64,000 bases of DNA from positions 1 to 64,000 of IMG/VR virus record IMGVR_UViG_3300043446_005562. The stretch is one strand, 5' to 3'. The notes beneath the pieces are model-generated. The model searched no databases. It worked only from the letters and a program-made list of their open reading frames with translations, and was not told the origin of the DNA. The position numbers were made by a program, and so were the translations under genes. Below, piece by piece: positions 10,882 to 46,883 of the stretch (the stretch's first letter is position 1; every line of letters begins with the position of its first letter).

Positions 10882-10940
10882 CCGGGCACCGGCCTAGTTA
10901 CCCCCGACGCGCCACCCCAAAAAAAAAAACCACGATAACA

Positions 10941-29389: not shown

Positions 29390-29531
29390 TTATTAAACTT
29401 TTTAATCTTTTTATTTCTTCAATTACATCATCGCCAAGTTCAATCTTTGACATCAGCGTTAGGTCAACGATTTGTCCTTCGTAAATGTTGATAAGTTCTT
29501 GTTGAACTTTTATTAAGTCAGAGTCATTCAT
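29373..29531 (-). CDS. hypothetical protein (52 aa, not in ORF track)
   Basis: MNDSDLIKVQQELINIYEGQIVDLTLMSKIELGDDVIEEIKRLKSLINEHSR fills gap with overlaps. Confidence 0.6.
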   Translation of the reverse strand: MNDSDLIKVQQELINIYEGQIVDLTLMSKIELGDDVIEEIKRLKSLINEHSR

Positions 29532-29904
29532 CTTCGTTTATTTTGTTTAATAATTGATTGTCCGTTATTGCTCCAGCCGTCATTAGCAATTTAAGTAGAG
29601 CTTCTAGATCCGTAAAGTGCAAGCTTATTTGATCCTTACTATGGGATCGCTCAATCGTAATGTCCCAACCTTCGCCGTTGGCCCATTCGGTAACCTCGTA
29701 GAAATCACCTTTTTTACTCCAAGTATCATCTGTGTTTACGCATAGAGCCCATGACTTTCTCTGATTATTTTCAATTTTGTATTCTCCCAAAAATGAAGGT
29801 TTGAAATTATCGCAAATCGGATCATTGCTGGTCTTTAAATGATCGGCCTCGCGCTGAAGCCTTTCAATTTCTTTAGATATTTGTGTTAGTCTGTCCATCT
29901 TCAT
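29524..29904 (-). CDS. hypothetical protein (126 aa)
   Basis: FYEVTEWANGEGWDITI motif; tight packing. Confidence 0.75.
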   Translation of the reverse strand: MKMDRLTQISKEIERLQREADHLKTSNDPICDNFKPSFLGEYKIENNQRKSWALCVNTDDTWSKKGDFYEVTEWANGEGWDITIERSHSKDQISLHFTDLEALLKLLMTAGAITDNQLLNKINEDE

Positions 29905-30106
29905 TATATTTTACGTAAAATTCTCGATTTGGGTCGCATGATCCATCTATTGAGTACCAATCCTTTTCAATAGCTGATTTGATCCATTGCGCATCGCGTT
30001 CAGTCTCAGCATAGGCAATCGTCCCAGTCTGTGATCTCTCGCCGCTATCCGGATCAATGTCAACAAATATTACTTTCCAGTTTAAATTATTCATTTTATG
30101 AGTCAT
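29873..30106 (-). CDS. hypothetical protein (77 aa)
   Basis: ATGA overlap with upstream ORF. Confidence 0.65.
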   Translation of the reverse strand: MTHKMNNLNWKVIFVDIDPDSGERSQTGTIAYAETERDAQWIKSAIEKDWYSIDGSCDPNREFYVKYNEDGQTNTNI

Positions 30107-30246
30107 GGCGTTTTATCGTGAATGATGTGTTGATTGAACCATTTTGAAAATCCCCAGTTAGGAAATTTTCTTTTGCAGAATTCGCCAAATGCCATAAACG
30201 AATAGGCAATGACTGCTGCTGAAAAATAGGTAATTAAGGCTTTCAT
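30103..30246 (-). CDS. small membrane protein (47 aa, not in ORF track)
   Basis: MKALITYFSAAVIAYSFMAFGEFCKRKFPNWGFSKWFNQHIIHDKTP. Confidence 0.55.
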   Translation of the reverse strand: MKALITYFSAAVIAYSFMAFGEFCKRKFPNWGFSKWFNQHIIHDKTP

Positions 30247-30249
30247 TTT

Positions 30250-30609
30250 TTAAAATTTAATTTCCCTGAATGAACCTGAGTCAGACCAAAATTCAAATGT
30301 GTCGCCTGCTTTGGGTTGAGGCCTGTCGTATTCAGCTCGGGCTTTTGCTAATTTCAAATCAATTGCAGCTTTATCAAATTGCAATTTTAAATTCTTCCAT
30401 TCCGAATCTAGCGATTCTAGCACCGAATCTGTAAAGTTTTTGCTCAAGCCGCTGGGCTCTATCAAAATCCACTTATTTGAGTTTATGACGCTCCATTTGG
30501 TTGATGTAGTCACACCATACAAAAAGAGTAATCTGGACTCTTCAATTTCGTGATGTTCTTTAATTAGATGGTTGAACACCAGATTCCCCAAGTCTATCAA
30601 GTCCTTCAT
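30250..30609 (-). CDS. hypothetical protein (119 aa)
   Basis: Start set at ATG 30609. Confidence 0.65.
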   Translation of the reverse strand: MKDLIDLGNLVFNHLIKEHHEIEESRLLFLYGVTTSTKWSVINSNKWILIEPSGLSKNFTDSVLESLDSEWKNLKLQFDKAAIDLKLAKARAEYDRPQPKAGDTFEFWSDSGSFREIKF

Positions 30610-31201
30610 TGTGTTTTTGTATTGTTTGTTTAACCCATTCAAAATTAACCGGTGTGTAATCTGTTAAGCACGCGCATACCGAATAGGCATTCTTGATTGG
30701 GTGCAAAACTTGATGTGAGTGGCCATATAGGTGGTATGATCCGTGAAATTTGCCGTTAAACTCCAAGATTGGATAGTGAAACAACACAACTCGACGGAAT
30801 CCTATTTTCTGTTCAGGATCAGGAAAGAAAATCTCTTCGTAATCTTTGAACTCTACGATCTTTGCAACTTCACTTAGTTCCCTGAACCAGTGAGAGTCAA
30901 TATGAGTATCGTGGTTGCCCTTTAGCCAAACGATATTTCCTTTTAATTGGCTGAATATCCATTTAAGGTAACTTAATTTTATTCGATGCATTGAGGCATC
31001 CCCCAGGAAAAAAACAGTATCATCCTCTTGCACAACTGAATTCCAGCGAGAAATTATCTCATTATCATGTTCTTCAATTGATTGGAAATTATGAAAGCCT
31101 TCTTCAAAACGCAGCACGTTATTGTGATCGAAATGCGGATCACTTATGAACCAGGTTTTTGCTGGATCGTAAATTTTGTTTTGTGGAATTTGAACACTCA
31201 C
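30560..31201 (-). CDS. calcineurin-like metallophosphoesterase
   Basis: FISDPHFDH, FFLGD, KGNHD, LFHYP, GHSH; GTG start. Confidence 0.92.
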   Translation of the reverse strand: MSVQIPQNKIYDPAKTWFISDPHFDHNNVLRFEEGFHNFQSIEEHDNEIISRWNSVVQEDDTVFFLGDASMHRIKLSYLKWIFSQLKGNIVWLKGNHDTHIDSHWFRELSEVAKIVEFKDYEEIFFPDPEQKIGFRRVVLFHYPILEFNGKFHGSYHLYGHSHQVLHPIKNAYSVCACLTDYTPVNFEWVKQTIQKHNEGLDRLGESGVQPSN

Positions 31202-32265
31202 GTTAGTAATTTTGTACTAACATACCCAAAAGCGGTTTCAGCGTCACTCATTACTTTGGATCTTTGTTGAAAGGCTAGATCAGTTTGGGCTTTATCGTAT
31301 TTGGAAGAAGACGTGTGTTTGTCTATTTTCGTCTTGTATATTTTAACCACTTCCTGTAAGAATTCGGTTGAGTTACGATATTTTGACCTAGCTAGATCGA
31401 ATGTTCCGTTCTGCTCCAAGGTTCTGGCAAATCCCAAGATTCCATTACAAATCTGTTCAAGACTTAAGCTGGTCACGTCAATGCCGGGGTGCTGTTCGAG
31501 ATATTGATCGAGCTGTACTGCCTTCTTCTCACCACGAGTAAATTCATCCGTGAATTCCGCAAGTTGAGCCAGAAATCGGTTGAAATCCCGAGTAACAACA
31601 CGCTCCTCAACGTCTTTACGAAATGCCGGGCTTACAAGTTCGCCGGCTTTTATTTTTGCTACGACTCCGCGGTCGGTCACTGAAACGCCCAGCGCATTAC
31701 CGAATGCCTGATACAGAAATCCTACCACGAAACCTTTAATACCTCTAATTGGCGTATAACGAGCCTTTGCCCAATCCGCCGAGTAGGTGAACGTTGGAAT
31801 GACGTCGACCTGCACCGGCCCAGTTTTTAAATTTATGACCAATTTGAGATTGCCTTCAGAGATGGCATCAGTTTCTTCTTTGTCTAGGTCCGGGCGATTG
31901 GCCTCGGCTGCCCACTGTAAAAAAAGACTATTGTACTTTTTAAGAGTATCGATCTCAACTCGACGACCCTGTGGCTCGTCAAGCGGATACATTACCAAAA
32001 TATCAACATCACCATAAGTTTTTTCAGGAGCCTCCTCAAGGTCCTTTTTGAAATAGACACCAGATCCGCCTGGACCAATCACCTTGACTGGTGCAAATCC
32101 GTGTGCTGAGCTCCAACGATTGAATTCTGCAAAAATTGACTCAAGGGTCTCTATTGCCTCCTGTAAAACAGCTGGCGTTATTTTAGTGCCCTGTGTCTTG
32201 GTTGTTGCCCAGCCTCCCATCTCATTGATATCGGTAAAATCAGTAAATGATTTAATGTTCTTCAA
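31198..32265 (-). CDS. DNA polymerase beta-superfamily nucleotidyltransferase
   Basis: GGSG...YGDVDILV (GS + DxD) and QVDVIP third Asp; MKNIKSFTDFTDINE leader; TTG start. Confidence 0.75.
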   Translation of the reverse strand: MKNIKSFTDFTDINEMGGWATTKTQGTKITPAVLQEAIETLESIFAEFNRWSSAHGFAPVKVIGPGGSGVYFKKDLEEAPEKTYGDVDILVMYPLDEPQGRRVEIDTLKKYNSLFLQWAAEANRPDLDKEETDAISEGNLKLVINLKTGPVQVDVIPTFTYSADWAKARYTPIRGIKGFVVGFLYQAFGNALGVSVTDRGVVAKIKAGELVSPAFRKDVEERVVTRDFNRFLAQLAEFTDEFTRGEKKAVQLDQYLEQHPGIDVTSLSLEQICNGILGFARTLEQNGTFDLARSKYRNSTEFLQEVVKIYKTKIDKHTSSSKYDKAQTDLAFQQRSKVMSDAETAFGYVSTKLLT

Positions 32266-32289
32266 AATTAAAAATCGTCTTTAGAGTAT

Positions 32290-33093
32290 TTATCGCTGAA
32301 CTTCAGGTACCCAATGCGTGGTCCGACCGTCCAATGTCTCTTCACGAATAACGGTATTTCCCTTGGAATCAAGCGGTTGAGCATACACTTCAAACTCAAA
32401 TACAAACTCTCCAAGGCCTCCGCCGACTCTTTGATAATTGCGAATGCTCGCTCCGCCCTGGTCGTATGAGGTCTGCATGATCTTTTTGATCCAGCCAAAG
32501 AGCACAGTCGACTCAACCGGGTCAATGTCCTTAACTAGCCGGTGGGGTGAAATTCCAGATCGATAGAGCACTTCGCACTTGATGTAATTGCCTATGCCTG
32601 CGCACACTCTCTGATCCATCAGCACCTCTGTAATGGTTTTGTTTGGGTACTTATTGATTCTCTGATTAAATTCAATAGGGGTGAAATCTGCATCATTCAG
32701 AGGATCTCGACCAAGGCTCTTAATCTTCTTATCGAGCTCAGCCCGGTCATGAGAAAATTTAATGGTGCCGAACCTACGCTGATCCACAAAATACAGGGCC
32801 CTGGAGTTCTCGATACCTATTCCAAAATGAGAATGCGTACCGCTTTCTTCTGACCAGTATCCGCTCATGCCCAAAGTTATCCACATGGTTGCACCAGTTT
32901 CAAACTCAAGCCACATGAACTTGCCACGAACTCCACCGTCTATTACCCGGCTCGGCAAAATCACCTGGTCCAGCCCAATTGGGCGCTTCTTGAGAAACCT
33001 GCCGCTAAATACCTGTAATTGGGTTACTCTGGATTCGCCGATCTCTTTTCTAAGATCCTCGTACACACGTCTGACTTCCGGTCCTTCTGGCAT
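32290..33093 (-). CDS. nei: Fpg/Nei DNA glycosylase/AP lyase, zincless-finger type
   Basis: N-terminal PEGPEV, RGKFMW, LGMSG, DQRRFG, H2TH GIGNY; no four-Cys finger; GRTTHW. Confidence 0.9.
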   Translation of the reverse strand: MPEGPEVRRVYEDLRKEIGESRVTQLQVFSGRFLKKRPIGLDQVILPSRVIDGGVRGKFMWLEFETGATMWITLGMSGYWSEESGTHSHFGIGIENSRALYFVDQRRFGTIKFSHDRAELDKKIKSLGRDPLNDADFTPIEFNQRINKYPNKTITEVLMDQRVCAGIGNYIKCEVLYRSGISPHRLVKDIDPVESTVLFGWIKKIMQTSYDQGGASIRNYQRVGGGLGEFVFEFEVYAQPLDSKGNTVIREETLDGRTTHWVPEVQR

Positions 33094-33130
33094 AAGATAA
33101 ATAATTTAAGAAAAAAATACCAAATACTAT

Positions 33131-33586
33131 ATGAAAAGGCATGTTCAAGGTTTTGAGTCATTTGAGAGAATCTATGAATACACTCTAAACGAGAAGAAAA
33201 AGATTGACCAAGACGGCGATGGTGATACTGACTTCGTTGATGCAAAAATTGCTCAATACACAAAGGGTGGTATCAAAAAGGACAAGGCAATCGCTAAGGC
33301 AAAAATGTTTGCAAAAAAGAACAATATCAAGGATTCAGCCAAGGCCGTAAAAGAGGGTTTCTGGAACAGATGGACCAAACCTACAGTCGACGATGCGGCT
33401 CACGATTCGCTACGTGGCCAGGGTCATAGTCACCGCGGCAAAGAGGATTCAGAGGAATACATCATGTTTGACGGCCAACGTTTTAGCCAAGATCAAATTG
33501 AATACGCAGATCTTCATGACACTGGCCGAATTCCAAGAATCGAAGGCGGCAAGCTGATCATTGCAAATCCTAACTGGAGTCTGTAA
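33131..33586 (+). CDS. putative head/core protein
   Basis: MKRHVQGFESFERIYE..LNE leader; DQDGDGDTDF Ca-loop-like motif; late promoter. Confidence 0.7.
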   Translation: MKRHVQGFESFERIYEYTLNEKKKIDQDGDGDTDFVDAKIAQYTKGGIKKDKAIAKAKMFAKKNNIKDSAKAVKEGFWNRWTKPTVDDAAHDSLRGQGHSHRGKEDSEEYIMFDGQRFSQDQIEYADLHDTGRIPRIEGGKLIIANPNWSL

Positions 33587-33589
33587 CCA

Positions 33590-34069
33590 ATGTTTAAATA
33601 TCTTTCCAATATACTATCAACAATAACGCCGGGGCAGCGCTTGATTGCGCTGTGCGTGCTCCTGCTCTCAATCGTAATCATTACGCTTGGCCCAAATTTA
33701 ATTGATGCAACGACTAAAGATACTGAAGAACTAACAACAAAAATTAATTTGCAAAGAGTTGAGATCAAGGACCTCTCCGACCAGATTAAAAAGTTGAATG
33801 ATCAACTGGTTTCAAACGAGAGCGAGTGCACCAATCGCTTGATTGACAAAGAGCGCCGAATTTTGACCGTGATAGACGAACTAGAAAGGGATCTTGCGCC
33901 GAAGCCAACCGTTAGACATCAGGCGAACTATCGTATGATTCAGGATTCAACTATGGCCATGATGATGCCTCCTCCACCAGAGCAGGCACAGCCCCAAGAT
34001 AATTCTAGGGCAATCAAGAAGTTGAAAAACCTCAAGCTTGATTTGATTAAAGACGTAAAGAAGCCTTAA
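33590..34069 (+). CDS. membrane-anchored coiled-coil protein, possible spanin-like
   Basis: N-terminal TM helix followed by long coiled coil. Confidence 0.65.
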   Translation: MFKYLSNILSTITPGQRLIALCVLLLSIVIITLGPNLIDATTKDTEELTTKINLQRVEIKDLSDQIKKLNDQLVSNESECTNRLIDKERRILTVIDELERDLAPKPTVRHQANYRMIQDSTMAMMMPPPPEQAQPQDNSRAIKKLKNLKLDLIKDVKKP

Positions 34070-34118
34070 AACTGGTTTAGTTTCTTAAGTAGAATAGGCT
34101 AAATCAAAACTTAAAAAC

Positions 34119-34316
34119 ATGTATTATTTAGCAAAATTACGCTTTGAGTCAGAGGACGACAACGGCAAAACCAAAAAGATTAGAGAACAGTACTTGGTAC
34201 AGGCATCTTCGGTAGGAGAAGCTGAGCAAAAGCTAATGGATCGATTTGGTCAAGGCATTTCGCCTTGCCAGTTAGAAGCAGTTCAAGAATCAAAAATCTT
34301 AGGCCTTATTGACTAA
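34119..34316 (+). CDS. DUF4494-like protein (Bacteroidota-type)
   Basis: YYLAKLRFE...GKTKKIREQYLVQASSVGEAE. Confidence 0.75.
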   Translation: MYYLAKLRFESEDDNGKTKKIREQYLVQASSVGEAEQKLMDRFGQGISPCQLEAVQESKILGLID

Positions 34317-34331
34317 AAGTTGACCGAGACT

Positions 34332-34364
34332 AAAAAAGAAAAGGAGCTTAGCGCTCCTTTTTTT
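34332..34364. terminator. bidirectional terminator
   Basis: AAAAGGAGC/GCTCCTTTT between convergent genes. Confidence 0.75.
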
Positions 34365-34584
34365 ATGTGAAATAGATTGGAAATTTCTCGACTAGACTCT
34401 TGAGTATAATTGAATCCTTTTCGCCTTTACTGAACATATCGTGTGCGTGTTCAAACATTTGAATGCTGGTTTCGTTACCTATGATTGCATCAATTTTTCG
34501 ATTGACAACTGCTGATGCACCGTTTTTTAATATCGATTGGGCCAGATCAGTTGGTTCAGGAATATAGTACTTGTTGAAACTCAT
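34363..34584 (-). CDS. hypothetical protein (73 aa)
   Basis: MSFNKYYIPE; AGTATAAT upstream. Confidence 0.75.
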   Translation of the reverse strand: MSFNKYYIPEPTDLAQSILKNGASAVVNRKIDAIIGNETSIQMFEHAHDMFSKGEKDSIILKSLVEKFPIYFT

Positions 34585-34607
34585 AATAATATTATACTTT
34601 ACTAAAC

Positions 34608-34639
34608 AAAAAAAGGTTAGCTTTTTAGGGCTAACCTTT
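34608..34639 (-). terminator. intrinsic terminator closing the putative ncRNA
   Basis: AAAGGTTAGC/GCTAACCTTT 10-bp stem plus T-run on minus strand. Confidence 0.8.
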
Positions 34640-35020
34640 GGTATCGTGGGGAAAACGTATGGAAGGATTAGGGTTCACCTTCAATTTGATGCTAAGCTTG
34701 CGTGTTTAAGCGACAACCTTCATACCCTCCTGTCAGAGGCGACTCAAAGCAAGTTGGATCCGCTTGAATCACTATCGTGTTTACCACAACAGTATGAGTG
34801 CTTTATCCCACCTAGCGAAGGATTATTCAGCCATTTAACGGGATTCTTGTATACCCGTATGCCGATCGCAAAATACCATTATATGTATATCAAAACCATA
34901 GATTCCAGTGGTTAGCTGGTTCAAGTTGACCGTTTGGTCTGCCGTTTACAGTCGGCCCTTGCGGAGCATCCTCCTAATCTACACCATTACCTGTTTTGCA
35001 AGCAGGTTGTTCTGGCACAT
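34640..35020 (-). ncRNA. candidate large structured non-coding RNA (~380 nt), family unknown
   Basis: No credible ORF; at least 10 hairpins and long-range helices seen by eye; ends at a strong terminator. Confidence 0.55.
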
Positions 35021-35022
35021 AC

Positions 35023-35301
35023 TCAGCTGAAGCTCATGACTTCTTCAACTGTTTCCCCTCGTAATTTTAAAGAACTTATGTTACTATTATACCAATACAA
35101 TTGAGAAGGTTTTGGTACAAATCCACTTTTTTTCAAAAATTTTTCAAATGAATCGTAAGGATAGTTTACTGTTGTAGAGCTGTCAACCTTTGCAATCTTG
35201 ATATAGGTTGACATTAACGGCGTCAAAAAAAATCCAGCAACCCTGTGCTCGATTCCGTCTTTTATTAAAATAAGTTCTTCTAATTGTACAGAATCTTGCA
35301 T
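35023..35301 (-). CDS. hypothetical protein (92 aa)
   Basis: ATG, tight packing. Confidence 0.7.
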   Translation of the reverse strand: MQDSVQLEELILIKDGIEHRVAGFFLTPLMSTYIKIAKVDSSTTVNYPYDSFEKFLKKSGFVPKPSQLYWYNSNISSLKLRGETVEEVMSFS

Positions 35302-35304
35302 CTT

Positions 35305-35523
35305 TTACTGTTTTTTATAACGCCAACGAAAGAAGATAGAGAGTCCAAAGAAAAATGCCGCTATAAAATACAACACGACATTCGCTCGCAACAAACTCCC
35401 AGTTACTTGGATTAGCCAGTACTGGACCACGTCGAACCCGAACGGATTGAAGAACAGCGCTATCATCATGCACCAAGTCGCTAGGTTGCCCAGCAAAATT
35501 TTTCTCCAAGTATCTACTATCAC
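35305..35523 (-). CDS. membrane protein (72 aa)
   Basis: LATWCMMIALFFNPFGFD plus second TM helix; GTG start. Confidence 0.65.
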   Translation of the reverse strand: MIVDTWRKILLGNLATWCMMIALFFNPFGFDVVQYWLIQVTGSLLRANVVLYFIAAFFFGLSIFFRWRYKKQ

Positions 35524-35610
35524 CGTCCATAGGATTTTGTTTTTTCATGAGTCTTAATCTAATTTAAGAGTCAAGGAAATTTTTGAAACTTCAAGATTTA
35601 TTTATTAGGC

Positions 35611-35877
35611 CTACCACTTCGCTTCTTGACCAATATCCGGTAATGCGCAATGAAATGCCTGCAGTCTAGTTTTAGCCTCTAGAAAACAGCCACAAATTTT
35701 ACACTGAATAAATGTTGGATTGAAGTGCTCACACTCCCTACACAGGTTCATGCGACGAGTCTTTTCAATATCGGACACAAACACCTTGTTCATGATCCTT
35801 GATAGAACGGTGGGTCGAGTCTGTTGTTGATTTGAACCGCAGCCGCAATCTTCAGTAGTCTGAGTGGTTTCTGACAT
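35611..35877 (-). CDS. Cys-rich DUF6171-like protein
   Basis: RMNLCRECEHF...CKICGCFLEAKTRL...CALP. Confidence 0.75.
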   Translation of the reverse strand: MSETTQTTEDCGCGSNQQQTRPTVLSRIMNKVFVSDIEKTRRMNLCRECEHFNPTFIQCKICGCFLEAKTRLQAFHCALPDIGQEAKW

Positions 35878-35878
35878 T

Positions 35879-36853
35879 TTAAACTAGAGTATTTTCAAAA
35901 GCTCTTTTATCATCAAATTCCAGGTAGTTTTCAAGTAGACTATTGGAATTTTGACGATACTTAAGTACAGCTAGATCCTTGGCCTTTGCCTCGACCTCGA
36001 TGTCAAAAGTGAGTCCATAAGTATTTATTTGCTCATAGACATAATCGGCATGGGACCTAGCAATAACACTTGGATCCTCGAAAGTTTTTCGACAGCTTGA
36101 GTAATGAGTGAGAGGAGTTCGACCGTGCCAAGTGGTTGAGGCAAGGCGCAGAGCAGCCTCCTCGGTAAGATCGCCGGTATTGAAGCGATGATGATGAAAG
36201 TCAAAGGTAATGGGTGTACCGATTTTAAGATAGACCATTGAATAGAGATCGGCCACCGAGTACTGGGCAGCCTTGTCATCGTTTTCGACAACTAGCCTGG
36301 CACGTGTACTGTGCTTAAGCAGATTGAAATTTTCGCAGAACCTGGCCGCAGCAGCTTCCTTGTCGCCATAGGATCCACCTAGATGAATATTGATTGGAAA
36401 TTGATAGTCAATCGGCAAGCCCATTAGGGTCATGATTTCTGCATGCTGATCAAGATCCTTGACTGTTTTGCGAACAACCGCTGGATTTGGAGAACACAAA
36501 ACATCGAACTGGCCCGGGTGCATTGAGATACGCATGTTGTGTTTTAGCACAAACTCGCCAATCGCCTGCATGTCCTGTAAAATAAAGTCAAAGTTGGGCA
36601 GCTCGGTGATTTCGTATTCGGACATCCACGGAAAAATATCGCTGGACATGCGATACACCATAATGTTGTTTGCAAGATTCCACTCAAGTATCTTGAGAAT
36701 GTCACGTACGTTTTGATGGGCAAGCTCGCCGCAGTAGGCTGGGCCCTTTTCTTGAAAGGTACGCTTGATCATACCACGATTGGCAGTGATGCGTTGGTCG
36801 GCTAGAGACAGATTAATACAGCAATAGCCAAGTCTGACGTTAGAATTTTGCAT
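35879..36853 (-). CDS. uvsE: UV-damage endonuclease (UvsE/UvdE)
   Basis: RLGYCCIN, RMSSDIFP, SMHPGQF, LVVENDD, FDFHHH, HAD, EAKAKD; start at ATG 36853. Confidence 0.95.
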   Translation of the reverse strand: MQNSNVRLGYCCINLSLADQRITANRGMIKRTFQEKGPAYCGELAHQNVRDILKILEWNLANNIMVYRMSSDIFPWMSEYEITELPNFDFILQDMQAIGEFVLKHNMRISMHPGQFDVLCSPNPAVVRKTVKDLDQHAEIMTLMGLPIDYQFPINIHLGGSYGDKEAAAARFCENFNLLKHSTRARLVVENDDKAAQYSVADLYSMVYLKIGTPITFDFHHHRFNTGDLTEEAALRLASTTWHGRTPLTHYSSCRKTFEDPSVIARSHADYVYEQINTYGLTFDIEVEAKAKDLAVLKYRQNSNSLLENYLEFDDKRAFENTLV

Positions 36854-36866
36854 AGGTTTAATATAC

Positions 36867-36891
36867 AAAAAAGAGGACGCTAAGGTCCTCT
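36867..36891 (-). terminator. intrinsic terminator
   Basis: AGAGGAC/GTCCTCT stem plus T-run on minus strand. Confidence 0.65.
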
Positions 36892-36896
36892 CTAGC

Positions 36897-37109
36897 TTAT
36901 TTTATTATCCAGTGCCAGAATTTCTTGTGCAGAGCTGGAATAGCTGTGCCCATTAAAGGAACCAAAATCATGGTAAAAACCAGAGTTCTGAGTAATGGAT
37001 GAAAGTTCTGAATCAATGGAAATAGCGTTATGAACATGATGTTTATGACAGGATATACGAATAGCCAGCTAATCAACATCATTTTCCAAATTTTTGGACG
37101 TTTTTGCAT
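36897..37109 (-). CDS. two-helix membrane protein (70 aa)
   Basis: PKIWKMMLISWLFVYP...LRTLVFTMILVPLM. Confidence 0.7.
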   Translation of the reverse strand: MQKRPKIWKMMLISWLFVYPVINIMFITLFPLIQNFHPLLRTLVFTMILVPLMGTAIPALHKKFWHWIIK

Positions 37110-37111
37110 TG

Positions 37112-37741
37112 TCAAAAGGTTATTTTTGTGTAATCAACGGTTACTGATCTCATTACTCTAATCACGTCAATTGCGTCCTGTAGAGCATCGTGAGTTACCT
37201 CACCTTCGACTCCAGCGCGTTTCATGCACTCGGCTAAATTAGGCAAGCCCTTATCGTTGGCCCAATCCATACACAGAATTGCTGGATCAATCATGCGCTG
37301 TCTGATTTGAATAGACGACGACCAGCCGGTTAGCTTCTGTAAGAACAGCTTGTCAAAGGTTGCAAAGTTTTTACCAGCAACGGTGATTCTAACTTGGCCA
37401 GTTTTTGACTCTGGGTCTCCCAAGCCGTGGGCCTGTAACCACATGCCCAAAGACTTTGCGACAAGACCCTCGGGCAAAATATTGTACTTTTTGCGAAGCT
37501 CAGCGCGTTCTTCTTTATTGGCGCGCTCCAACTCGCCAAGCTGAGCAAGAATATCCTTGTTCATGACTAGCGCAAATGGACTGCCTGTGTACTGTGGGTG
37601 TTCAACAAGGCATTTGAATCTAGGCAGATCATTAATCGGCACAAGATTTTCAGTATCCTCAATGACTGCCCCAATCTGAATGGTTTGGCAGGTTTCCGGA
37701 TCTAGCCCAGTTGTTTCAATGTCTATTGATACGTATTTCAT
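37112..37741 (-). CDS. DEDDh 3'-5' exonuclease
   Basis: IDIETTGLD, GKNFATFD, MID, HDALQDA. Confidence 0.92.
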   Translation of the reverse strand: MKYVSIDIETTGLDPETCQTIQIGAVIEDTENLVPINDLPRFKCLVEHPQYTGSPFALVMNKDILAQLGELERANKEERAELRKKYNILPEGLVAKSLGMWLQAHGLGDPESKTGQVRITVAGKNFATFDKLFLQKLTGWSSSIQIRQRMIDPAILCMDWANDKGLPNLAECMKRAGVEGEVTHDALQDAIDVIRVMRSVTVDYTKITF

Positions 37742-37754
37742 ACTTAATATTATA

Positions 37755-39179
37755 CTAATGTTTTACAGTAATGGTCTCAATCTGCAAATCGCCGAGGTGT
37801 TGACCGTTGTGCTTGTAGACAAAGACTTCGTACTTTTCGCTGGCCGGCACTGTGTATTCAAATGTGAATAGAGGTCGACCGTTCTTTAGTGGACGACAGC
37901 ACCCCTTTTCGCAAGATTCGCCCTGGACCTTGTGATCGCTACCAAAGAAAGTCATGTAGCCAGCAAAGCCCTCTGACGTAAGCATTGGCCAATCCTTGTC
38001 GGCATTGACATAGACCTCATAAACTCCTCTTGGTACCTTTGTGAATGATACAGTAATTTCAATTATTGCCTTATTGACAGTCGGCGCTGACTTGGCAGGC
38101 CTAATCGTTACGGCATCAGTTATTTGATCGTTTACTCGTATTGGGCGAGTTGACTGTCCAACCACTTGAGCTTTATGAAATTTTGCAAGCTGATGATTCT
38201 CACAAGGTCTGACCTCAGTGTCGTCGTAATCATAGTCCATTTCATACAGAATATCAATGATCTGTTCTGGCGTGTACTCAACTTTAGCGCCGTTTTCATC
38301 AAAGAAAACATAGGGCCACGGTGCAGATTTCAACTCTTCAAGAGTAACCTGCTGTCCATTTCTGGAATTGGTCCATTGCTGCCAGATTCTGTCAATATTG
38401 GAATGGTGCATCCAAAAGATGGGGTCAAAACCGGCGGTCGGCACCCAACCCATCAGTCCAGTGTTTGTGACTGTGCCGGTAATTGGATTATTAAAATGTA
38501 AATTACCCGTTACGTCGTTGCCCGCTCCTATGTAGTCGTGCATTGCACCGTGAGGAGCCGCATTGATTTGCAGATTGAATGATCGATAATCCGTGCACTC
38601 AAATAGTTTACCAAGGTATAGCGCTCTCTCAATTTCGCCAGAGATTGGATAGCCTCGATTCAAAGAGTCGAACCGACAGGCCTCATACAGGCTTGAATGA
38701 GGATCTCTAAAAGTTGCCTCTAGTCGTTTATGATCTTTCAGCCCACCCGTATAACCCCAATATGGTAACGCAAAATCTTTGTAACCGGAAAGGGTTCTGA
38801 CAATTTTTTCAAAATGATGAATGTAGAGTCGGTGCCAAACTAGAAAATGAATCTTCTCCTGTCCGCCTGGCGTGTGAGTGCAATTGTCCCAAGCCTCCTT
38901 TAAATCAGCTGGAGTTTGATAGGCATCGCATAGCGGATTGGGTTGAATTGTGTCCGGTATCCAATGAATCGCGCCCTGATAGTACCAACTTACGGGATCA
39001 ATGCAATTTTTGTTACGCATTATTCGTAATGCTTTTTCCATTGCCTGAATGTGGGGCACCGCCTCTGGCGAGTGCATTTCGTGTCGAACGTATCTCTTGT
39101 TATTAGAGGTCGGCCATTGACACGAGTGTAGGGCTGCAATTAGTACAACAATCCCAAATTTAATTAACGAATTTTTCAT
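37755..39179 (-). CDS. tyrosinase / polyphenol oxidase (type-3 copper), predicted lipoprotein
   Basis: CuA NCTH...HFLVWHRLY; CuB PHGAMHDYIG...FDPIFWMHHSNIDRIW; signal MKNSLIKFGIVVLIAALHS-C; start at ATG 39179. Confidence 0.9.
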   Translation of the reverse strand: MKNSLIKFGIVVLIAALHSCQWPTSNNKRYVRHEMHSPEAVPHIQAMEKALRIMRNKNCIDPVSWYYQGAIHWIPDTIQPNPLCDAYQTPADLKEAWDNCTHTPGGQEKIHFLVWHRLYIHHFEKIVRTLSGYKDFALPYWGYTGGLKDHKRLEATFRDPHSSLYEACRFDSLNRGYPISGEIERALYLGKLFECTDYRSFNLQINAAPHGAMHDYIGAGNDVTGNLHFNNPITGTVTNTGLMGWVPTAGFDPIFWMHHSNIDRIWQQWTNSRNGQQVTLEELKSAPWPYVFFDENGAKVEYTPEQIIDILYEMDYDYDDTEVRPCENHQLAKFHKAQVVGQSTRPIRVNDQITDAVTIRPAKSAPTVNKAIIEITVSFTKVPRGVYEVYVNADKDWPMLTSEGFAGYMTFFGSDHKVQGESCEKGCCRPLKNGRPLFTFEYTVPASEKYEVFVYKHNGQHLGDLQIETITVKH

Positions 39180-39192
39180 ACTGTGATATTTT

Positions 39193-39606
39193 TTAAAAAG
39201 GTAGATCATCATTGCTCCAGTCGAAATTGGTCTCGGCTTGAGGTTTTGTTTTTGTGTCAAGATCACCGAATGCGTCATCGTCAAAGTCGCCAGCATCAGC
39301 CGTTACGTTGATGTTTGAGTTCTTTTTCTGACCGCTGATTCGCCAAGCTTCAAGCGTCGTGAAGTACTTTACCGAACCTAATTTGTCGGTCCAGTCACGG
39401 CCCTTTATGTCAAATGAAACGGTTACGGTGTCGCCAACTGAGTAAGATTCCAACATATCACATTTTTCTTGCACAAGTTGGAATAGAATTTTTTGTGGGT
39501 ACTTATCTCCCACCTCAATTACGAATTCACGTTTACGGAATCCCTTATTGAAAGTTTGCGATGGAAAAATCTCAATGATGATTCCGGTTAAATCAAATTT
39601 GCTCAT
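39193..39606 (-). CDS. DUF3127 OB-fold protein (SSB-like, Bacteroidota-type)
   Basis: GFRKREFVIE..KYPQ.I.FQL, VSFDIKGRDW, YFTTLEAWRI, C-terminal DDLPF. Confidence 0.88.
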   Translation of the reverse strand: MSKFDLTGIIIEIFPSQTFNKGFRKREFVIEVGDKYPQKILFQLVQEKCDMLESYSVGDTVTVSFDIKGRDWTDKLGSVKYFTTLEAWRISGQKKNSNINVTADAGDFDDDAFGDLDTKTKPQAETNFDWSNDDLPF

Positions 39607-39607
39607 G

Positions 39608-40090
39608 TTAAAAGTCTGGATTTGTTATTTTTATGTCGTAGTTTTGAAAGTTTGCGAAATCAAGTTCGTCTGCCTCTATGCGACGCTCGACCGAGTCACC
39701 TGGCATGTTACGGTCCAGCATACGCTGGCGTCGAATGGACTGATCAATATCCAAGAACATCACGAAACTTGAACGGCGATCCTCTTCCGAAAGATGGCTC
39801 AAGCCCTTTGGGGTCATGATGAAAACGTCGTCGTTATAGAACTGCTTAACTGTGGTTCCATAAATCCAGCCGTTGAAGTTGACCCATTCATAAAAATCTC
39901 CACTGTCTATCATGTCCTGAGCAGAGGCCGGCGTAATAAAAATGTAGTCGTGCCCGTCAACCTCACCCGGTCTTGGCGGTCTGGTTGTATAGCTTACGGC
40001 GTACTTGTAACCCCTTTTTTCTAGGGTTTTGCGCATGTGATCCTTGCCGCTTGCGCCTCGGCCAACTAAGATGATTCTGCTCTTTTTCAT
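39608..40090 (-). CDS. gmk: guanylate kinase-like nucleotide kinase
   Basis: GRGASGKD P-loop, SYTTRPPRPGEVDGHDYIF, YGT. Confidence 0.88.
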   Translation of the reverse strand: MKKSRIILVGRGASGKDHMRKTLEKRGYKYAVSYTTRPPRPGEVDGHDYIFITPASAQDMIDSGDFYEWVNFNGWIYGTTVKQFYNDDVFIMTPKGLSHLSEEDRRSSFVMFLDIDQSIRRQRMLDRNMPGDSVERRIEADELDFANFQNYDIKITNPDF

Positions 40091-41383
40091 TTAAAATTCG
40101 CGATGTGTTTCATATACTGTTTTTATAACTGGAAATCTGAGTGAATGATTTCCGTGTTGATCTGTTGTCTCTTCAAAGAATTGCACGGTAATTGTTTTAC
40201 CTAGAATATCATTTGGGTTTTGAAAATAGTGTCGACGCTGTTCAAGCGAAAAGCCTGAACCCACTCTAACCTGATTGCCCCTGTGCTGCACAAAAACGGC
40301 CTTTAGCATTTCCTCCTCCTCTTCGCGCTCGTTTACGATAACCCTGTGAGTTCCCATCTCCAAGCCAGTCACCTCATACTCGGCATCGTGCATTTTTTTG
40401 ACCTTGAGTAGATTCTTTGAGCGCTTGCCCTCATAACCCACATCCTTACGAATCATGATGCCTTCATAGCCCATTTCGGTTGCATCAGCCGCGACCTTTT
40501 CAAAATGCTCGCGATCGACTAATTTGAACTGTGGCAACGGCTCAGCAAACTGTAGGCCAGATTCAATTAAGAAACCGTTTAGCATTATCAGTCTAGCCGA
40601 AAGAGTTATCTCACTTGAGCCAGCGGTAAATTCGTCAAGCTCTAATAGATCAAACACATAGTACTTTGGGGTTTCGATTGTGTGATCCTTTTTGCCGATC
40701 TCCTTGATTATTCCCTGGAAATCTTCAAGGCCGGACTCTCGCATGATACAAACCTCGCCGTCTAAAACCTTGGATCGAAGCCCTAATTTCATGAGATCCT
40801 GACGTAAGTTATCTAGGGTTAAGAATTCCTTGCCCTGTCTAGAAAAGAACTTGATCTGACCTGCCTCATCAATTACTGTGATGCAGCGAACTCCATCCAG
40901 CTTGCGGCTTGCCCACCACATACCCGAATCAAAGTCCACCTTCTTCTCGGCAGATTCAAACTTTTCAGCTAGGGCAACTTCAAATGTTGGTACCGTGCCC
41001 GGCAGAACTGAATTGATTAGTGTAGAAGTTGCTCTAGTTTTTATGTTGCGATCTATCACATCATAGATGATGTCTGCAAATTCCTGATATTTTAAGATAA
41101 AACCATTAACTGCCTGTATTGCAGTGTGGCCAGTCACACGACGTTCATTCAGATCATCGAGCATTTCAAACAGATCTAAATAATTATCAGAAATTAGATC
41201 GGATCTCTTTTTAAGATTGGCTGAAGTAACGTGGTACTGCTTAAACGGCGTGTACGTGTACTTAAATATTTTTCGTAGAAACGGAGAATCGTATTTTAAT
41301 AAAATCTCTTTTTTGGCATTCGTCGAAGACGTTGCCTTCATCTCTTCAATGAATTCTCTAAGTTTAATAAAATCAGTTTGCAT
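40091..41383 (-). CDS. ATP-dependent DNA ligase
   Basis: SRKLDGVRC, LDGEV, VFD, EGIMIR, LLKVK, RFP. Confidence 0.95.
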   Translation of the reverse strand: MQTDFIKLREFIEEMKATSSTNAKKEILLKYDSPFLRKIFKYTYTPFKQYHVTSANLKKRSDLISDNYLDLFEMLDDLNERRVTGHTAIQAVNGFILKYQEFADIIYDVIDRNIKTRATSTLINSVLPGTVPTFEVALAEKFESAEKKVDFDSGMWWASRKLDGVRCITVIDEAGQIKFFSRQGKEFLTLDNLRQDLMKLGLRSKVLDGEVCIMRESGLEDFQGIIKEIGKKDHTIETPKYYVFDLLELDEFTAGSSEITLSARLIMLNGFLIESGLQFAEPLPQFKLVDREHFEKVAADATEMGYEGIMIRKDVGYEGKRSKNLLKVKKMHDAEYEVTGLEMGTHRVIVNEREEEEEMLKAVFVQHRGNQVRVGSGFSLEQRRHYFQNPNDILGKTITVQFFEETTDQHGNHSLRFPVIKTVYETHREF

Positions 41384-41406: not shown

Positions 41407-41436
41407 AAAAAAAGTCGACACAGGGCCGACTTTTTT
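41407..41436 (-). terminator. intrinsic terminator
   Basis: AAAAGTCG/CGACTTTT stem. Confidence 0.7.
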
Positions 41437-41455: not shown

Positions 41456-43162
41456 TTATCTAGCTTTCAAGAAATCCGCAAACGATGTGATTACGGCCTG
41501 TTCCTTAACCGGTTGAGCTTCTGCTGCTGGAACTGCGCCCTTTTCCAAATTATTCTTTATTGTTTGAACGCTGTTCGCTAATGGACCAACTCCACCAATA
41601 CCTCCAAGATAACCGTCAACCAACACTGCAAGATCACCGCTTAATTCGGAACTAACACAATAATCATATAGCGTACCTTCCTCGCCGTAATTTTTATTCC
41701 AGATAGCATTTAGCTTTTGCCAAACGTCTGGGGTTAAACTAAGCATTGCAAATGCAATCTTAAGTTCTCCGTCCCCGCCGGTATAGCCTTTAGCCTCTTT
41801 GTGCAATTCATCACACATTTCAGTTAATTTTTTATCGTCCATTTGACCAGAAGCACCCGCTGATAACGGTTCTCCACCTTTCATTGCTGCAACTGCGTCT
41901 GGGATTGCGTCGACCGCTAAACTAGCACCGCCGACAATTAGAGCAGCAGTTTTTGGATCAAGCTGAGATAAACCTTGTTTAACTGCTTGTGGCGCAACTC
42001 TTGCAACCTCTTTTAGGGATTGAAAGAATGTTGATGAATCTTTTGCCATTTCAGCTGCCATACGTTCTCCGTTTAGGCTCATTGCGCCGCCTTTTGTTGC
42101 AGTCAAGAATCTTTCAATTGATGAGAAATTTTTGACGCCCTTTAGTACATTAACCTCTTCTGCGCTTAATGAAATTGCAGTTCCTAGGTTTTTTAATTTA
42201 CTAGCGGATTGGATTACTTCACCGGTTTTTGCTGCCTGATAGGTAAGTTTAGCTGCAGTTAATGCCTCTTCGCCGGCTGTAACCGCAGTATTTAGATTTC
42301 TAACTTCCGCTCCAGCTCTGCCTAATGTTGCGATATTTTTAAAGGCTGATCCGACCCTAGCTGTTGAAGCGACCGCTGTTGGCGCTGCTCCGCCTGCAGT
42401 AAATGCAGTCAATGCATAAGTACCAGCCATGATTGTTAGGTCAACTAATAAACTCTGCATTGCATCAACCCCTAGCGCGGTTGAAATATCGCTTTGTGTT
42501 AATTCAGCTCCAAACAGGCCTCGTGCAAATACGTCAGGCGAACCTGTGAATTCTCCGTCCACCATATTGAGTAAAGAGGTTCCGAATCTCTCTTGGTATC
42601 TAGCTCCAATCGCCAACAGTACCTCTTTTGCTGGGGCTTTTTTGTCGTAACAATACGCGTATATTGCACCAGCAACAGATGCCATTTTTTCTTCGTCTGT
42701 TCCAAAATCAATTCCCAAGAAAGTTTTATCGGCTGATTTGTTAAGTTGCGTTGTGATGTAGTCTAGATCTAATCCTTCAATTAATTTAGCAGTTGAGTCA
42801 AAATCGATCCAGATTCCAATTTTACTATCTGGAGTATTGGTCTTATTGATGACTACCTTGTAATCAGTCTCTCCAATTTTTACTGAAAATTTAGCTTGAG
42901 TTTTTGAAGCATCCCCCGCTAGAATGTTAGCCTGAGAATCAATTGCATCAAATGCCTCCTTTGGAGTTTTACTAATAATGACGTTTTTTAAGGCCTTAAC
43001 CTCTTCTGAGTCGGTCGGCAAAATCGAAATTGTTGAACCCTCAGGTTTTGCGCCGACGCTCGTTGATGCAGGTTTTGCTGCATCCTTTTCGATTAATGAA
43101 TAGTAGCCCAAAGATTTATTTTCATTAAGTAGAGCGTAATTCGTTATATTGATATTTCTCAT
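41456..43162 (-). CDS. large putative virion protein with two annexin-like repeats and a hydrophobic central segment
   Basis: FGTDEEKM...YQERFGTSLLNMVDGEF; LHKEAKGYTGGDGE...YGEEGTLYDYCVSSELSGDL. Confidence 0.65.
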   Translation of the reverse strand: MRNINITNYALLNENKSLGYYSLIEKDAAKPASTSVGAKPEGSTISILPTDSEEVKALKNVIISKTPKEAFDAIDSQANILAGDASKTQAKFSVKIGETDYKVVINKTNTPDSKIGIWIDFDSTAKLIEGLDLDYITTQLNKSADKTFLGIDFGTDEEKMASVAGAIYAYCYDKKAPAKEVLLAIGARYQERFGTSLLNMVDGEFTGSPDVFARGLFGAELTQSDISTALGVDAMQSLLVDLTIMAGTYALTAFTAGGAAPTAVASTARVGSAFKNIATLGRAGAEVRNLNTAVTAGEEALTAAKLTYQAAKTGEVIQSASKLKNLGTAISLSAEEVNVLKGVKNFSSIERFLTATKGGAMSLNGERMAAEMAKDSSTFFQSLKEVARVAPQAVKQGLSQLDPKTAALIVGGASLAVDAIPDAVAAMKGGEPLSAGASGQMDDKKLTEMCDELHKEAKGYTGGDGELKIAFAMLSLTPDVWQKLNAIWNKNYGEEGTLYDYCVSSELSGDLAVLVDGYLGGIGGVGPLANSVQTIKNNLEKGAVPAAEAQPVKEQAVITSFADFLKAR

Positions 43163-43190: not shown

Positions 43191-44342
43191 TTATTTTCCA
43201 GTAGTAACAGTTCCGCCAGTCGGTGCGGCTAAAGGAGCAGCTGTTGTTGTATTAGTCGTCTCACCAGGTGCAGATTGAGTCACGGTAGCAGAGGTTGCTC
43301 CTTCTGGCTTGTTAATGTAGATGAAGCCGCCTTGACCGGAAGTTCCGCCTGTTCCGCCTGTTCCACCGGTACCGCTTGTGCCTGAACTACCGGACGTACC
43401 TTTGCCTGAAAGATCCCAAAGCTGTTTTAGTCGATCTAGGGTAATTCCTACTTTTTTACAGAATTTTGCAAGATAGGTAGTATCTGCTTCAGTCACAGCA
43501 TTGTGTTCTGCATCCTTACCGTCAAAGAACATTCCAAAGGCAACCGCTGTATTTGCACCGAAATCGCCGTCTGCTGCTCCAAGCTTATCCTGAACCTTTT
43601 TTGCAGGATCACCGTATCTGTCAACGAATACTTTTTCTTTAAGAATTAACTGTGCAAATTTTACCTCTCTGGCCTTGGTGCCTCTATTGACCTTGGTACC
43701 ACTAACTGTACCATTGGTCATGGAAAGAAGTTTTTCCTGTAGAAATTGAAGTATTGCATCCGGGCTGTCCAACTTGACATCATTCCAATCCCATGGATAG
43801 GTACCGCTGGTACCACTTTGACCACCTGAGCCTGAATTGTCCTGAACTTTAACCTCCTCACTCTTGTCCTTTACTGGCTGTGTGCCCATTTTTTGAGCGT
43901 CCTTTACGTCATAAAGTTTAAGCTTGCCGTCTTTGCTTGTTAATATCGGTTGGGCTTTAGTCGTATCAAAGTCCTTTGCATTCCTAACTGATAAAATTCC
44001 CTTGAATATGTGTTGCCCGGTTAATTTTCTTTCGCGGTCTTTTGTTACCGCAATGAATACGATATTTTGACCGACAGCGTTCATTACTGTGCTACTTGCC
44101 GCAAGCTGATTGGCTGCTTCTTGCTTGGCTAGATTTTCGTCTTCGGTTTCCATTTTCATTACAAAATGAAATGCTGCGATTTCTCCAGAGTTAGTGTCAG
44201 GCTTATCGGTATCAACTTTAAATTTTTGGTCTGGTGTTAGAAATGAGAACAGAGCCTCATTTATTGGCATTGTGCCCTTTTCTCCAGTAGTTTTTCCGTA
44301 ACTTTCATTAACGAAGTCATCAAATGATTTGAAACTTTTCAT
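43191..44342 (-). CDS. putative virion protein with GTSG linkers and PG-binding-like segment
   Basis: MKSFKSFDDFVNE leader; VKFAQLIL...ADGDFGANT. Confidence 0.7.
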   Translation of the reverse strand: MKSFKSFDDFVNESYGKTTGEKGTMPINEALFSFLTPDQKFKVDTDKPDTNSGEIAAFHFVMKMETEDENLAKQEAANQLAASSTVMNAVGQNIVFIAVTKDRERKLTGQHIFKGILSVRNAKDFDTTKAQPILTSKDGKLKLYDVKDAQKMGTQPVKDKSEEVKVQDNSGSGGQSGTSGTYPWDWNDVKLDSPDAILQFLQEKLLSMTNGTVSGTKVNRGTKAREVKFAQLILKEKVFVDRYGDPAKKVQDKLGAADGDFGANTAVAFGMFFDGKDAEHNAVTEADTTYLAKFCKKVGITLDRLKQLWDLSGKGTSGSSGTSGTGGTGGTGGTSGQGGFIYINKPEGATSATVTQSAPGETTNTTTAAPLAAPTGGTVTTGK

Positions 44343-46213: not shown

Positions 46214-46693
46214 TTAACGAAGTCTATCTAAAATTATTCGTTGAGATGCTGCAACATTTGCATAGGCCTGATCAATATCAACAAAACCGGCCCAATCCAA
46301 CTCTTCCTCTTGTAGATTCTGCTTTGGCACTCGAAGTCCATCGAGACCAATTTCCGCTGGATCAGATATTCTACACACAAGATAATGAATGTTATTTCTG
46401 AACTTTTTACCGCTCCAAACCTCAGCAGTTTGAATTGCCGGCTCTACCTGATCGGGTCTAATTTTTAATCCGGTCTCTTCAAAAGTTTCCCGGAAAGCGG
46501 CCGCCTCCGGCGATTCGCCCTCTTCCATTTTACCCTTGGGAATTCCCATTACGGGCTTGACCCAGCTTGAATTGGTTGGATGAACCAGCAAAATCATTTT
46601 TTTACCAGTGTCGACTTGAGTATAGACAATTGCAATGCCAGCTGAATCGCTTCTCTTTTTTGGAGCCGCGAAATTTTCAAAATCTTTAATCAT
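46214..46693 (-). CDS. Nudix hydrolase
   Basis: GKMEEGESPEAAAFRETFEETG Nudix box. Confidence 0.93.
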   Translation of the reverse strand: MIKDFENFAAPKKRSDSAGIAIVYTQVDTGKKMILLVHPTNSSWVKPVMGIPKGKMEEGESPEAAAFRETFEETGLKIRPDQVEPAIQTAEVWSGKKFRNNIHYLVCRISDPAEIGLDGLRVPKQNLQEEELDWAGFVDIDQAYANVAASQRIILDRLR

Positions 46694-46883
46694 TAGAGTT
46701 TGAACTATTAAGTGATTGACGGTATTTCGCCTTTTTGATTTCGTCTCGACGCTGCACGCTAGGTTTTTTAAATTCTCGACGTTCGCGTAATTCAGAAAGA
46801 GTCTTGGTCTTGTCGAATTTCTTCTTTAGGACCTTTAGCGCCCTATCAATTGAACCAATTTCCTTAACGTTGACTATTAGCAT
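46686..46883 (-). CDS. rpsU: 30S ribosomal protein bS21
   Basis: MLIVNVKEIGSIDRALKVLKKKFDKTKTLSELRERREFKKPSVQRR..IKKAKY; Bacteroidota-like. Confidence 0.93.
   Translation of the reverse strand: MLIVNVKEIGSIDRALKVLKKKFDKTKTLSELRERREFKKPSVQRRDEIKKAKYRQSLNSSNSND

Follow-up and report, generated by a model that had tools for sequence, protein, structure and literature searches.

What does a phage gain from carrying a tyrosinase? The question is raised by the gene P0001, which lies on the minus strand of the window, that is, of the whole 64,000-nucleotide stretch that was analyzed (bases 1-64000 of the IMG/VR virus record IMGVR_UViG_3300043446_005562, 252,618 bp, CheckV 93%). An initial annotation, made from the letters of this stretch, had described P0001 as a phage-encoded lipoprotein tyrosinase that could pigment or cross-link the envelope of the infected cell and so shield its progeny from ultraviolet (UV) light or oxidants, mask receptors or open access to humic phenolics. 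We found that the protein has the fold, all the copper ligands and the two-domain architecture of a latent tyrosinase, that its gene resides in a genuine phage genome, between phage genes, and that it is maintained in the phage lineage by strong purifying selection. Enzyme identity and pro-enzyme design are thus well supported, whereas the biological role is not. The reading that we favor, at about even confidence, is that of an exported, membrane-anchored, self-metallating pro-tyrosinase that would supply the envelope of the infected cell with quinones or melanin.

Active site, lid and membrane anchor

The protein matches the Pfam family PF00264 (Tyrosinase) with a score of 91.3 bits, the cut-off being 22.6, while NCBIfam gave only sub-threshold matches to MelC2 (NF047834, 39.3 bits against a cut-off of 450) and BagH, and PHROGs holds no family for it. 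The copper ligands were mapped by aligning a profile, built on an alignment of 45 sequences (A1), to HcTyr1 of Hahella sp. CCB MM4 (PDB 8B74), whose crystallographic copper ligands are His43/78/87 and His211/215/238 (PMC11609597). At the CuA site, the His of GAIH72 corresponds to His43, the motif C100-T-H102 to Cys-Gln-His78, and the His of W-H116-R to His87; between HA2 and HA3 the phage chain is longer by a 5-residue insertion, and its H111, which stands opposite a Tyr of HcTyr1, is therefore no ligand. At the CuB site, the third ligand is H259, the second His of an HH pair as in HcTyr1 and in vsTyr, the tyrosinase of Verrucomicrobium spinosum, and H258 is the non-ligand "7th histidine" (PMC10526336). 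In a larger alignment of 137 rows (123 of the phage/metagenome clade and 14 cellular), H72, C100, H102, H116, E124, H210, G211, H214, H258, H259, D263, C59 and C84 are all invariant. The complete CuA and CuB histidine sets noticed in the initial annotation were therefore confirmed, and so was the identification of the gene as a phage-borne tyrosinase whose product is targeted to the membrane.

Two further features of the site bear on the kind of chemistry that may be expected. The C-x-H at HA2 is the Cys-His thioether motif of vsTyr and of fungal and plant enzymes (PMC10526336), and according to a review all characterized bacterial tyrosinases with a C-terminal domain carry this bridge (PMC11608171); the invariant C100-T-H102 matches the C-x-H of vsTyr and HcTyr1, and the bond is predicted from the motif. 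The activity-controller positions are occupied by Gly211 and Asp215, and residues of the Gly/Asp type have been reported as typical of tyrosinases and not of strict catechol oxidases (PMC11608171), which may favor a tyrosinase here but is indicative only. An AlphaFold2 model of the protein (predicted local distance difference test, pLDDT, 89.7; predicted template modeling score, pTM, 0.89) shows the helical-bundle core fold of solved tyrosinases.

The model also contains a C-terminal beta-sandwich that packs over the active site, a lid domain of which the initial annotation makes no mention. Over residues 25-474 the model aligns with solved latent two-domain tyrosinases and polyphenol oxidases (PPOs), the best structure match being HcTyr1 (8b74; score 31.0, root mean square deviation 3.8 A over 365 residues), followed by tomato PPO (6hqi, 28.5), the Ralstonia enzyme TYR (7xio, 28.4), latent apple tyrosinase (6els, 27.8) and latent aurone synthase (4z11-14, about 26). 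F412 falls, in the profile alignment, on Phe397, the placeholder residue in the lid of HcTyr1, and both F411 and F412 are invariant in the 137 rows. A Phe plug in the lid, as read from this alignment, indicates that the protein is built as a pro-enzyme with a plugged pocket, and the lid domain's presence implies that the enzyme would be made in a latent form. When the lid domain alone was used for a sequence search of the PDB, no match was obtained, and in a fold search of BFVD the lid gave only weak beta-sandwich (C1q-like) matches with TM values of 0.18 or less.

Beyond the plug, by 11-16 residues, lie three cysteines, C423, C427 and C428, in a loop whose residues 418-426 have low pLDDT in the model. 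This C-x(2-4)-CC loop is present in 121 of the 123 phage-clade rows and in none of the 14 cellular ones; at the same position, cellular Bacteroidota sequences are rich in His and Met, and cyanobacterial ones have neither the His/Met nor the Cys motif. The arrangement resembles that of the latent fungal enzymes abPPO4 and Aspergillus oryzae MelB (PDB 4OUA, 5M6B, 3W6Q/3W6W), in which a Phe plug (Phe454 and Phe513, respectively) is followed by a CXXC on a disordered loop, at 462-465 in abPPO4, and the insertion of copper into the active site has been ascribed to this CXXC (PMC4157443; PMC10526336). By analogy, we infer that the Cys loop of the phage protein may load copper, in which case the enzyme would be independent of a caddie protein or a host chaperone. 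In Streptomyces, the tyrosinase MelC2 has the same type-3 copper chemistry, but the plug residue (Tyr98) and copper delivery are supplied by the caddie MelC1 as an accessory module (PMC6312201; PMC11608171). The two functions thus belong to a separate protein in Streptomyces and would be fused to the enzyme in the phage, where no caddie gene adjoins the tyrosinase, its neighbors being the DUF3127 and exonuclease genes.

Comparison with the closest known systems further delimits the phage protein. HcTyr1, a cellular and lid-bearing bacterial tyrosinase, is only about 24% identical to it, has a shorter HB2-HB3 segment besides lacking the HA2-HA3 insertion, and has no Cys after the plug, where the phage protein has C-x3-CC; the phage protein also differs by its membrane anchor. 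The pre-pro-tyrosinase vsTyr (PDB 8BBQ/8BBR) is soluble, carries a Tat signal and has Asn at both activity-controller positions, whereas the signal of the phage protein is of the Sec type and includes a lipobox-like Cys, in place of which relatives have a membrane helix. Cellular homologs of Bacteroidota and cyanobacteria share the length, the two-domain plan, the invariant ligands and the FF plug, and those of Bacteroidota have lipobox N-termini, but they fall outside the phage clade and lack its Cys loop.

The N-terminus of the phage protein consists of a positively charged MKNSLIK, a hydrophobic run and L-H-S-C20, with a helix over residues 2-19 in the model. The corresponding motifs at the position of Cys20 are LSGC, FSSC and VHSC in its three nearest relatives. 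Membrane targeting was recognized in 117 of the 123 phage-clade rows, 59 of them with a lipobox-like end and 58 with an N-terminal hydrophobic anchor without Cys; among cellular homologs, the Bacteroidota show clear lipoboxes and the cyanobacteria ordinary signal peptides. As the type of anchor varies while targeting is kept, we consider a membrane-proximal, extracytoplasmic placement to be the conserved feature, and lipidation to be one way of reaching it. The invariant extra cysteines C59 and C84 were also counted in favor of export.

Residence in a phage genome and relatives

The record has a Terminase_6N gene at 66171-66761, found by profile search, whereas Terminase_6C matched in none of 5 records and Phage_sheath_1 gave only sub-threshold matches, in two other records. 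The flanking ligase, guanylate kinase, SSB-like (single-stranded DNA-binding protein) and exonuclease genes all match PHROGs, the GC content of the tyrosinase gene (44.8%) is in line with that of its neighbors, and the standard genetic code is sufficient for the locus. Outside the window, at G000:C1:239361-239591, a 643-aa frame of the same record ends in a Por_Secre_tail domain, which belongs to type IX secretion. As this secretion system is a trait of Bacteroidota, a Bacteroidota host is indicated, and the record is probably that of a phage of Bacteroidota. Por_Secre_tail-like domains also occur in the records G405 and G406, pointing to phage proteins that are routed via the type IX secretion system of the host. 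A short contig binned in a Bacteroidota metagenome-assembled genome (JAURFW010000092.1, 2,131 bp) carries a partial tyrosinase homolog with 57% identity, which is the level of the phage clade; the contig may be a phage fragment that was mis-binned, or else it may hint at the host.

A word-indexed search gave 458 relatives, and the best 120 protein clusters have about 51-79% identity to the phage protein and the same length. Of the 16 tyrosinase loci counted in IMG/VR, some belong to near-complete records, with lengths of 299, 281 and 476 kb. In 11 of 11 look-ups, on contigs of up to 476 kb and one of 816 kb, the context was phage-like, with dense small unnamed open reading frames (ORFs) and scattered phage-type genes. 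The initial annotation had called the gene unusual cargo for a phage. This is so among known phages, since PHROGs has no such family, tblastn of the tyrosinase against 50,697 GenBank phage records gave no match and BFVD holds no tyrosinase fold; it does not hold among uncultured huge phages, where the gene occurs in about 120 clusters and several lineages. Megablast of 20 kb of the window against the GenBank phage records gave no match either, and no description of a phage-encoded tyrosinase was found in the full-text literature, of which coverage was partial.

Seven related contigs (L002-L006 and L016 of IMG/VR, and the 127-kb ENA contig L018) keep the gene order ligase, guanylate kinase, DUF3127, tyrosinase, exonuclease and UvdE, with tyrosinases 61-71% identical and neighbors 62-83% identical. 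Between the L002-L006 orthologs, the ratio of nonsynonymous to synonymous substitution rates (dN/dS) is 0.04-0.05 at an unsaturated dS of 0.8-1.05, as is seen under strong purifying selection. Across lineages the neighborhoods vary, in at least five arrangements: the syntenic ligase to UvdE type (as in L018); HU, ClpP, RNase P protein and GGACT (L038, L042 and L045); ThyA, GIY-YIG and deoxynucleoside monophosphate kinase (L040, on a 347-kb contig); S-adenosylmethionine synthetase and ankyrin (L043, L044 and L046); and others (L053, L054 and L055). In L045 (JGI 3300071516, Ga0620986_00085), the homolog P0196 lies at 10001-11464 of a contig of 816,658 bp, in a phage-like neighborhood with HU, ClpP, RNase P protein, transaldolase and many small unnamed ORFs, in the gene order of L038 and L042; if this contig is one phage genome it would be exceptionally large, but it may instead be a chimera or concatemer or include a host flank.

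Cellular relatives are rarer and more distant than those of phages. Homologs of Telluribacter, Mucilaginibacter, Hymenobacter and Owenweeksia are 40-51% identical and those of cyanobacteria 35-40%, and when 400 Bacteroidota species genomes were sampled evenly, a match (E<=1e-10) was obtained in only 5 further ones, all with 40% identity or less. Two trees, the second a quick PMSF (posterior mean site frequency) tree made with IQ-TREE, placed every cellular row outside a single clade of all phage/metagenome rows (support 89 and 86). The free trees suggested in addition that the phage clade is nested within cellular Bacteroidota, a claim that we dropped because in the approximately unbiased (AU) test a tree with the cellular Bacteroidota rows monophyletic was better by 25.6 log-likelihood units and was not rejected (p 0.85).

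Transcription unit and neighboring genes

The features of the locus are collected in Table 1. A longer tyrosinase frame reaches 39296 and would overlap the DUF3127 gene upstream at its 3' end, whereas the ATG at 39179 lies 13 nt past the stop of that gene, so that 39179 is the most economical start. One terminator-like hairpin precedes the ligase gene, which has a TATAAT-like box upstream, and a second follows the small ORF; as the two hairpins bracket the stretch from the ligase to the small ORF, the tyrosinase is internal to a predicted unit of six genes. The gene order ligase, guanylate kinase, DUF3127 and tyrosinase given in the initial annotation proved correct by Pfam annotation, and the distance of 0.9 kb to uvsE agrees with the UvdE gene found 887 bp downstream. 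The tyrosinase does not stand at the end of the operon, as had been stated there, since the exonuclease gene and the small ORF come after it and before the hairpin. The small ORF matches no family, nor is it conserved among the syntenic relatives. The DUF3127 protein is probably the SSB of the phage, because of its PHROG SSB matches and of a tail that resembles the C-terminal tip of SSB.

Table 1. Features of the tyrosinase locus, in the order of transcription (positions are those of the window)
Feature	Position	Strand	Basis or remark
Terminator-like hairpin preceding the ligase gene	41436..41408		
ATP-dependent DNA ligase (opens the unit)	40091..41383	-	Pfam and PHROG match
Guanylate kinase (gmk)	39608..40090	-	Pfam and PHROG match
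DUF3127/SSB-like protein	39193..39606	-	PF11325; phrog_4932 (annotated SSB); acidic DDLPF tail
Tyrosinase gene P0001	37755..39179	-	474 aa plus stop
Signal peptide with lipobox-like end	39120..39179	-	residues 1-20, L-H-S-C20
Catalytic type-3 copper domain	38214..39095	-	about residues 29-322
CuA site: H72, C100-T-H102 (thioether-type motif), H116	38832..38966	-	invariant, 137 rows
CuB site: H210, H214, H259; H258 (7th histidine); G211/D215 (activity controller)	38403..38552	-	alignments
C-terminal beta-sandwich lid domain	37758..38168	-	about residues 338-474; structure matches
Plug and putative copper loop: F411-F412-G413, then C423-x3-C427-C428	37896..37949	-	alignments, model
RNase_T-like 3'-5' exonuclease	37112..37741	-	Pfam and PHROG match; 13 nt downstream of the tyrosinase stop
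Small ORF, 72 aa, two predicted membrane helices	36897..37115	-	last gene before the terminator
Terminator-like hairpin and T run, closing the unit	36870..36893	-	sequence
UV damage endonuclease UvdE, next transcription unit	35879..36868	-	PF03851, 198 bits
Fpg/Nei glycosylase	32290..33093	-	Pfam/NCBIfam

The unit belongs to a larger block of repair and nucleotide genes on the minus strand (28184-41383), with thymidylate synthase, Fpg/Nei, UvdE, exonuclease, guanylate kinase and ligase, in which the thymidylate synthase is unusually long (401 aa) and matches in two stretches. Directly upstream of the operon are two large ORFs without PHROG match, at 41456-43162 (-) and 43191-44342 (-), the one of 568 aa being rich in Ala and the one of 383 aa carrying C-terminal runs of Gly, Ser and Thr. 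Further away, a small ORF at 46686-46883 (-) is 63% identical to an ORF of L018 carrying the Pfam domain Ribosomal_S21, so that ribosomal protein S21 is apparently among the products of the phage.

Possible roles during infection

In the reading that we favor, the pre-protein would be exported by the Sec pathway and held on the periplasmic face of the membrane by lipidation of Cys20 or, in many relatives, by an uncleaved N-terminal helix. It would fold as a latent pro-enzyme, with the lid placing Phe412 in the mouth of the active site, and the flexible Cys423/427/428 loop beside the plug would take Cu(I) and pass it to the six histidines, with no need of a host chaperone or caddie, while Cys100 could form a thioether to His102. 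Once the lid is displaced or clipped, the open active site would carry out the O2-driven oxidation of tyrosine, catechols or exposed Tyr side chains to o-quinones, which would give a melanin-like polymer or cross-linked envelope components. The most likely benefit would be that the infected cell, long-lived in the case of a huge phage, is shielded from light and oxidants together with the DNA replicating in it. Taken as a whole, this reading, according to which the product of the gene would be a working phenol oxidase of the type-3 copper class, either tyrosinase or catechol oxidase, made during infection from a gene transcribed together with replication and repair genes, stands in our judgment at an even balance between right and wrong.

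A role as UV shield is plausible and would fit several observations. Near the tyrosinase lie the repair genes for Fpg, UvdE, ligase and exonuclease; UvdE is present in 3 of the 4 near-complete tyrosinase phages, and in two unrelated tyrosinase-bearing phage contigs a repair-type gene stands upstream of the tyrosinase, namely UvdE in L054 (850-1761), at 5 kb, and in L055 (4809-6080), at 1 kb, the gene of a GIY-YIG nuclease resembling UvrC. A neighbor of the tyrosinase in L054 combines Cu-binding_MopE and Por_Secre_tail domains; a copper-binding partner of the MopE type was not found in the records G000, G404, G405 and G406, where the controls were silent too, which leaves this negative result with little weight.

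Several points weigh against the favored reading. The adjacency of tyrosinase and UvdE is limited to this phage's own lineage, with unrelated neighbors elsewhere, and UvdE occurs in 88 of the 50,697 GenBank phage records, nearly all of them phages of >180 kb. UvdE is thus mostly a jumbo-phage gene, and we judged its co-occurrence with the tyrosinase to be weak evidence for a UV role. Among GenBank phages, this UvdE is matched best (52% identity) in LR756502.1 (628094-629002), an uncultured phage of 642,428 bp in which tblastn found no match to the tyrosinase. Regarding the anchor, the lipobox consensus is [LVI][ASTVI][GAS]C, and the His at -2 of LHSC is non-canonical; the lipobox signal proposed in the initial annotation reads here as a signal-peptide-like N-terminus with a putative, lipobox-like lipidation site at Cys20, located where the nearest relatives have a comparable Cys. 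In addition, the rows with an anchor only include the syntenic sub-lineage L002-L006, so that lipidation is not essential to function, and the residues after Cys20 are non-acidic, which, given the lipoprotein export signal of Bacteroidota, makes surface exposure unexpected. Protection of the long-lived infected cell against light and oxidants is therefore ranked first only modestly; envelope tanning, phenol detoxification and pigment modification match the anatomy of the protein equally well.

The strongest of the rivals, although on balance unlikely, is quinone tanning of periplasmic or outer-membrane proteins, which would mask receptors or stiffen the envelope and thereby serve superinfection exclusion, protection from grazers or the timing of lysis. 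It is consistent with an enzyme tethered near the membrane, with only about 8 residues from Cys20 to the first strand, with targeting that is kept even where the type of anchor differs, and with the cell-wall gene neighbors in L046 (PG_binding_1, Glyco_hydro_19 and NAGPA), but genes for receptors or exclusion are not consistently linked to the tyrosinase, whose neighborhoods vary by lineage, and protein substrates and small phenols are indistinguishable from the present evidence.

Next in order, and somewhat more improbable, comes an action on small molecules of the environment or the host, in which the enzyme would remove inhibitory humic or plant phenolics in the periplasm or modify phenolic host pigments, keeping the metabolism of the host running throughout a long infection. 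The nearest cellular homologs come from soil and freshwater Bacteroidota (Mucilaginibacter, Telluribacter humicola), and the lid-bearing HcTyr1/2 accept a broad range of phenolics and have been discussed in the context of wetland phenol turnover (PMC11609597); on the other hand, no genes for phenolic uptake or catabolism adjoin the tyrosinase in any lineage examined, and the quinone products are themselves toxic.

We regard it as very unlikely that the protein is no oxidase in vivo and that, with the lid staying closed, it serves to bind O2 or copper, in the manner of a haemocyanin unit or of a copper store or sensor. The top sequence scores are indeed those of functional units of mollusc haemocyanin, which share the plan of a core plus a beta-sandwich, and the plug residues FF are invariant. 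Mollusc haemocyanin itself is a string of several functional units forming an O2 carrier, which the phage protein is not. Hardly tenable, finally, is the view that P0001 is bacterial and sits on a contig that is chimeric or was mis-binned, or that it was captured recently and has no role for the phage, for although Bacteroidota homologs with 45-51% identity are known and two tyrosinase-bearing records carry the "provirus" label of IMG/VR, this is already contradicted by the gene order shared by seven independent contigs with a tyrosinase divergence resembling that of the neighbors, a dN/dS of ~0.04, the terminase and completeness of the record, the phage-like context in every look-up, and sampled cellular genomes without any copy of >51% identity and with few further matches among the 400 Bacteroidota.

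Returning to the pro-tyrosinase at the envelope, a wider proposal can be made tentatively, and we think it possible but rather doubtful, that a broad set of huge phages of Bacteroidota has the tyrosinase as its signature auxiliary gene and would melanize the infected cell's envelope or tan it with quinones, the host-type His/Met copper loop having been replaced in the phage lineage by a Cys "copper grappler" of its own that would make the enzyme independent of host copper handling.

In conclusion, this enzyme is widespread and strongly selected in uncultured huge phages, yet without match in the PHROG, GenBank-phage and BFVD collections. The phage clade may represent a compact, self-contained and membrane-tethered form of pro-tyrosinase, and the natural exchange between a Cys loop and a His/Met loop suits the study of how type-3 copper sites acquire their metal. 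If these tyrosinases melanize infected cells, they would be a viral counterpart of melanization. If active, they would add oxidative phenol chemistry, in the form of pigment, quinone cross-linking and phenol turnover, to infected cells in lakes and soils, and would provide a concrete, assayable marker for the ecological strategy of huge phages.

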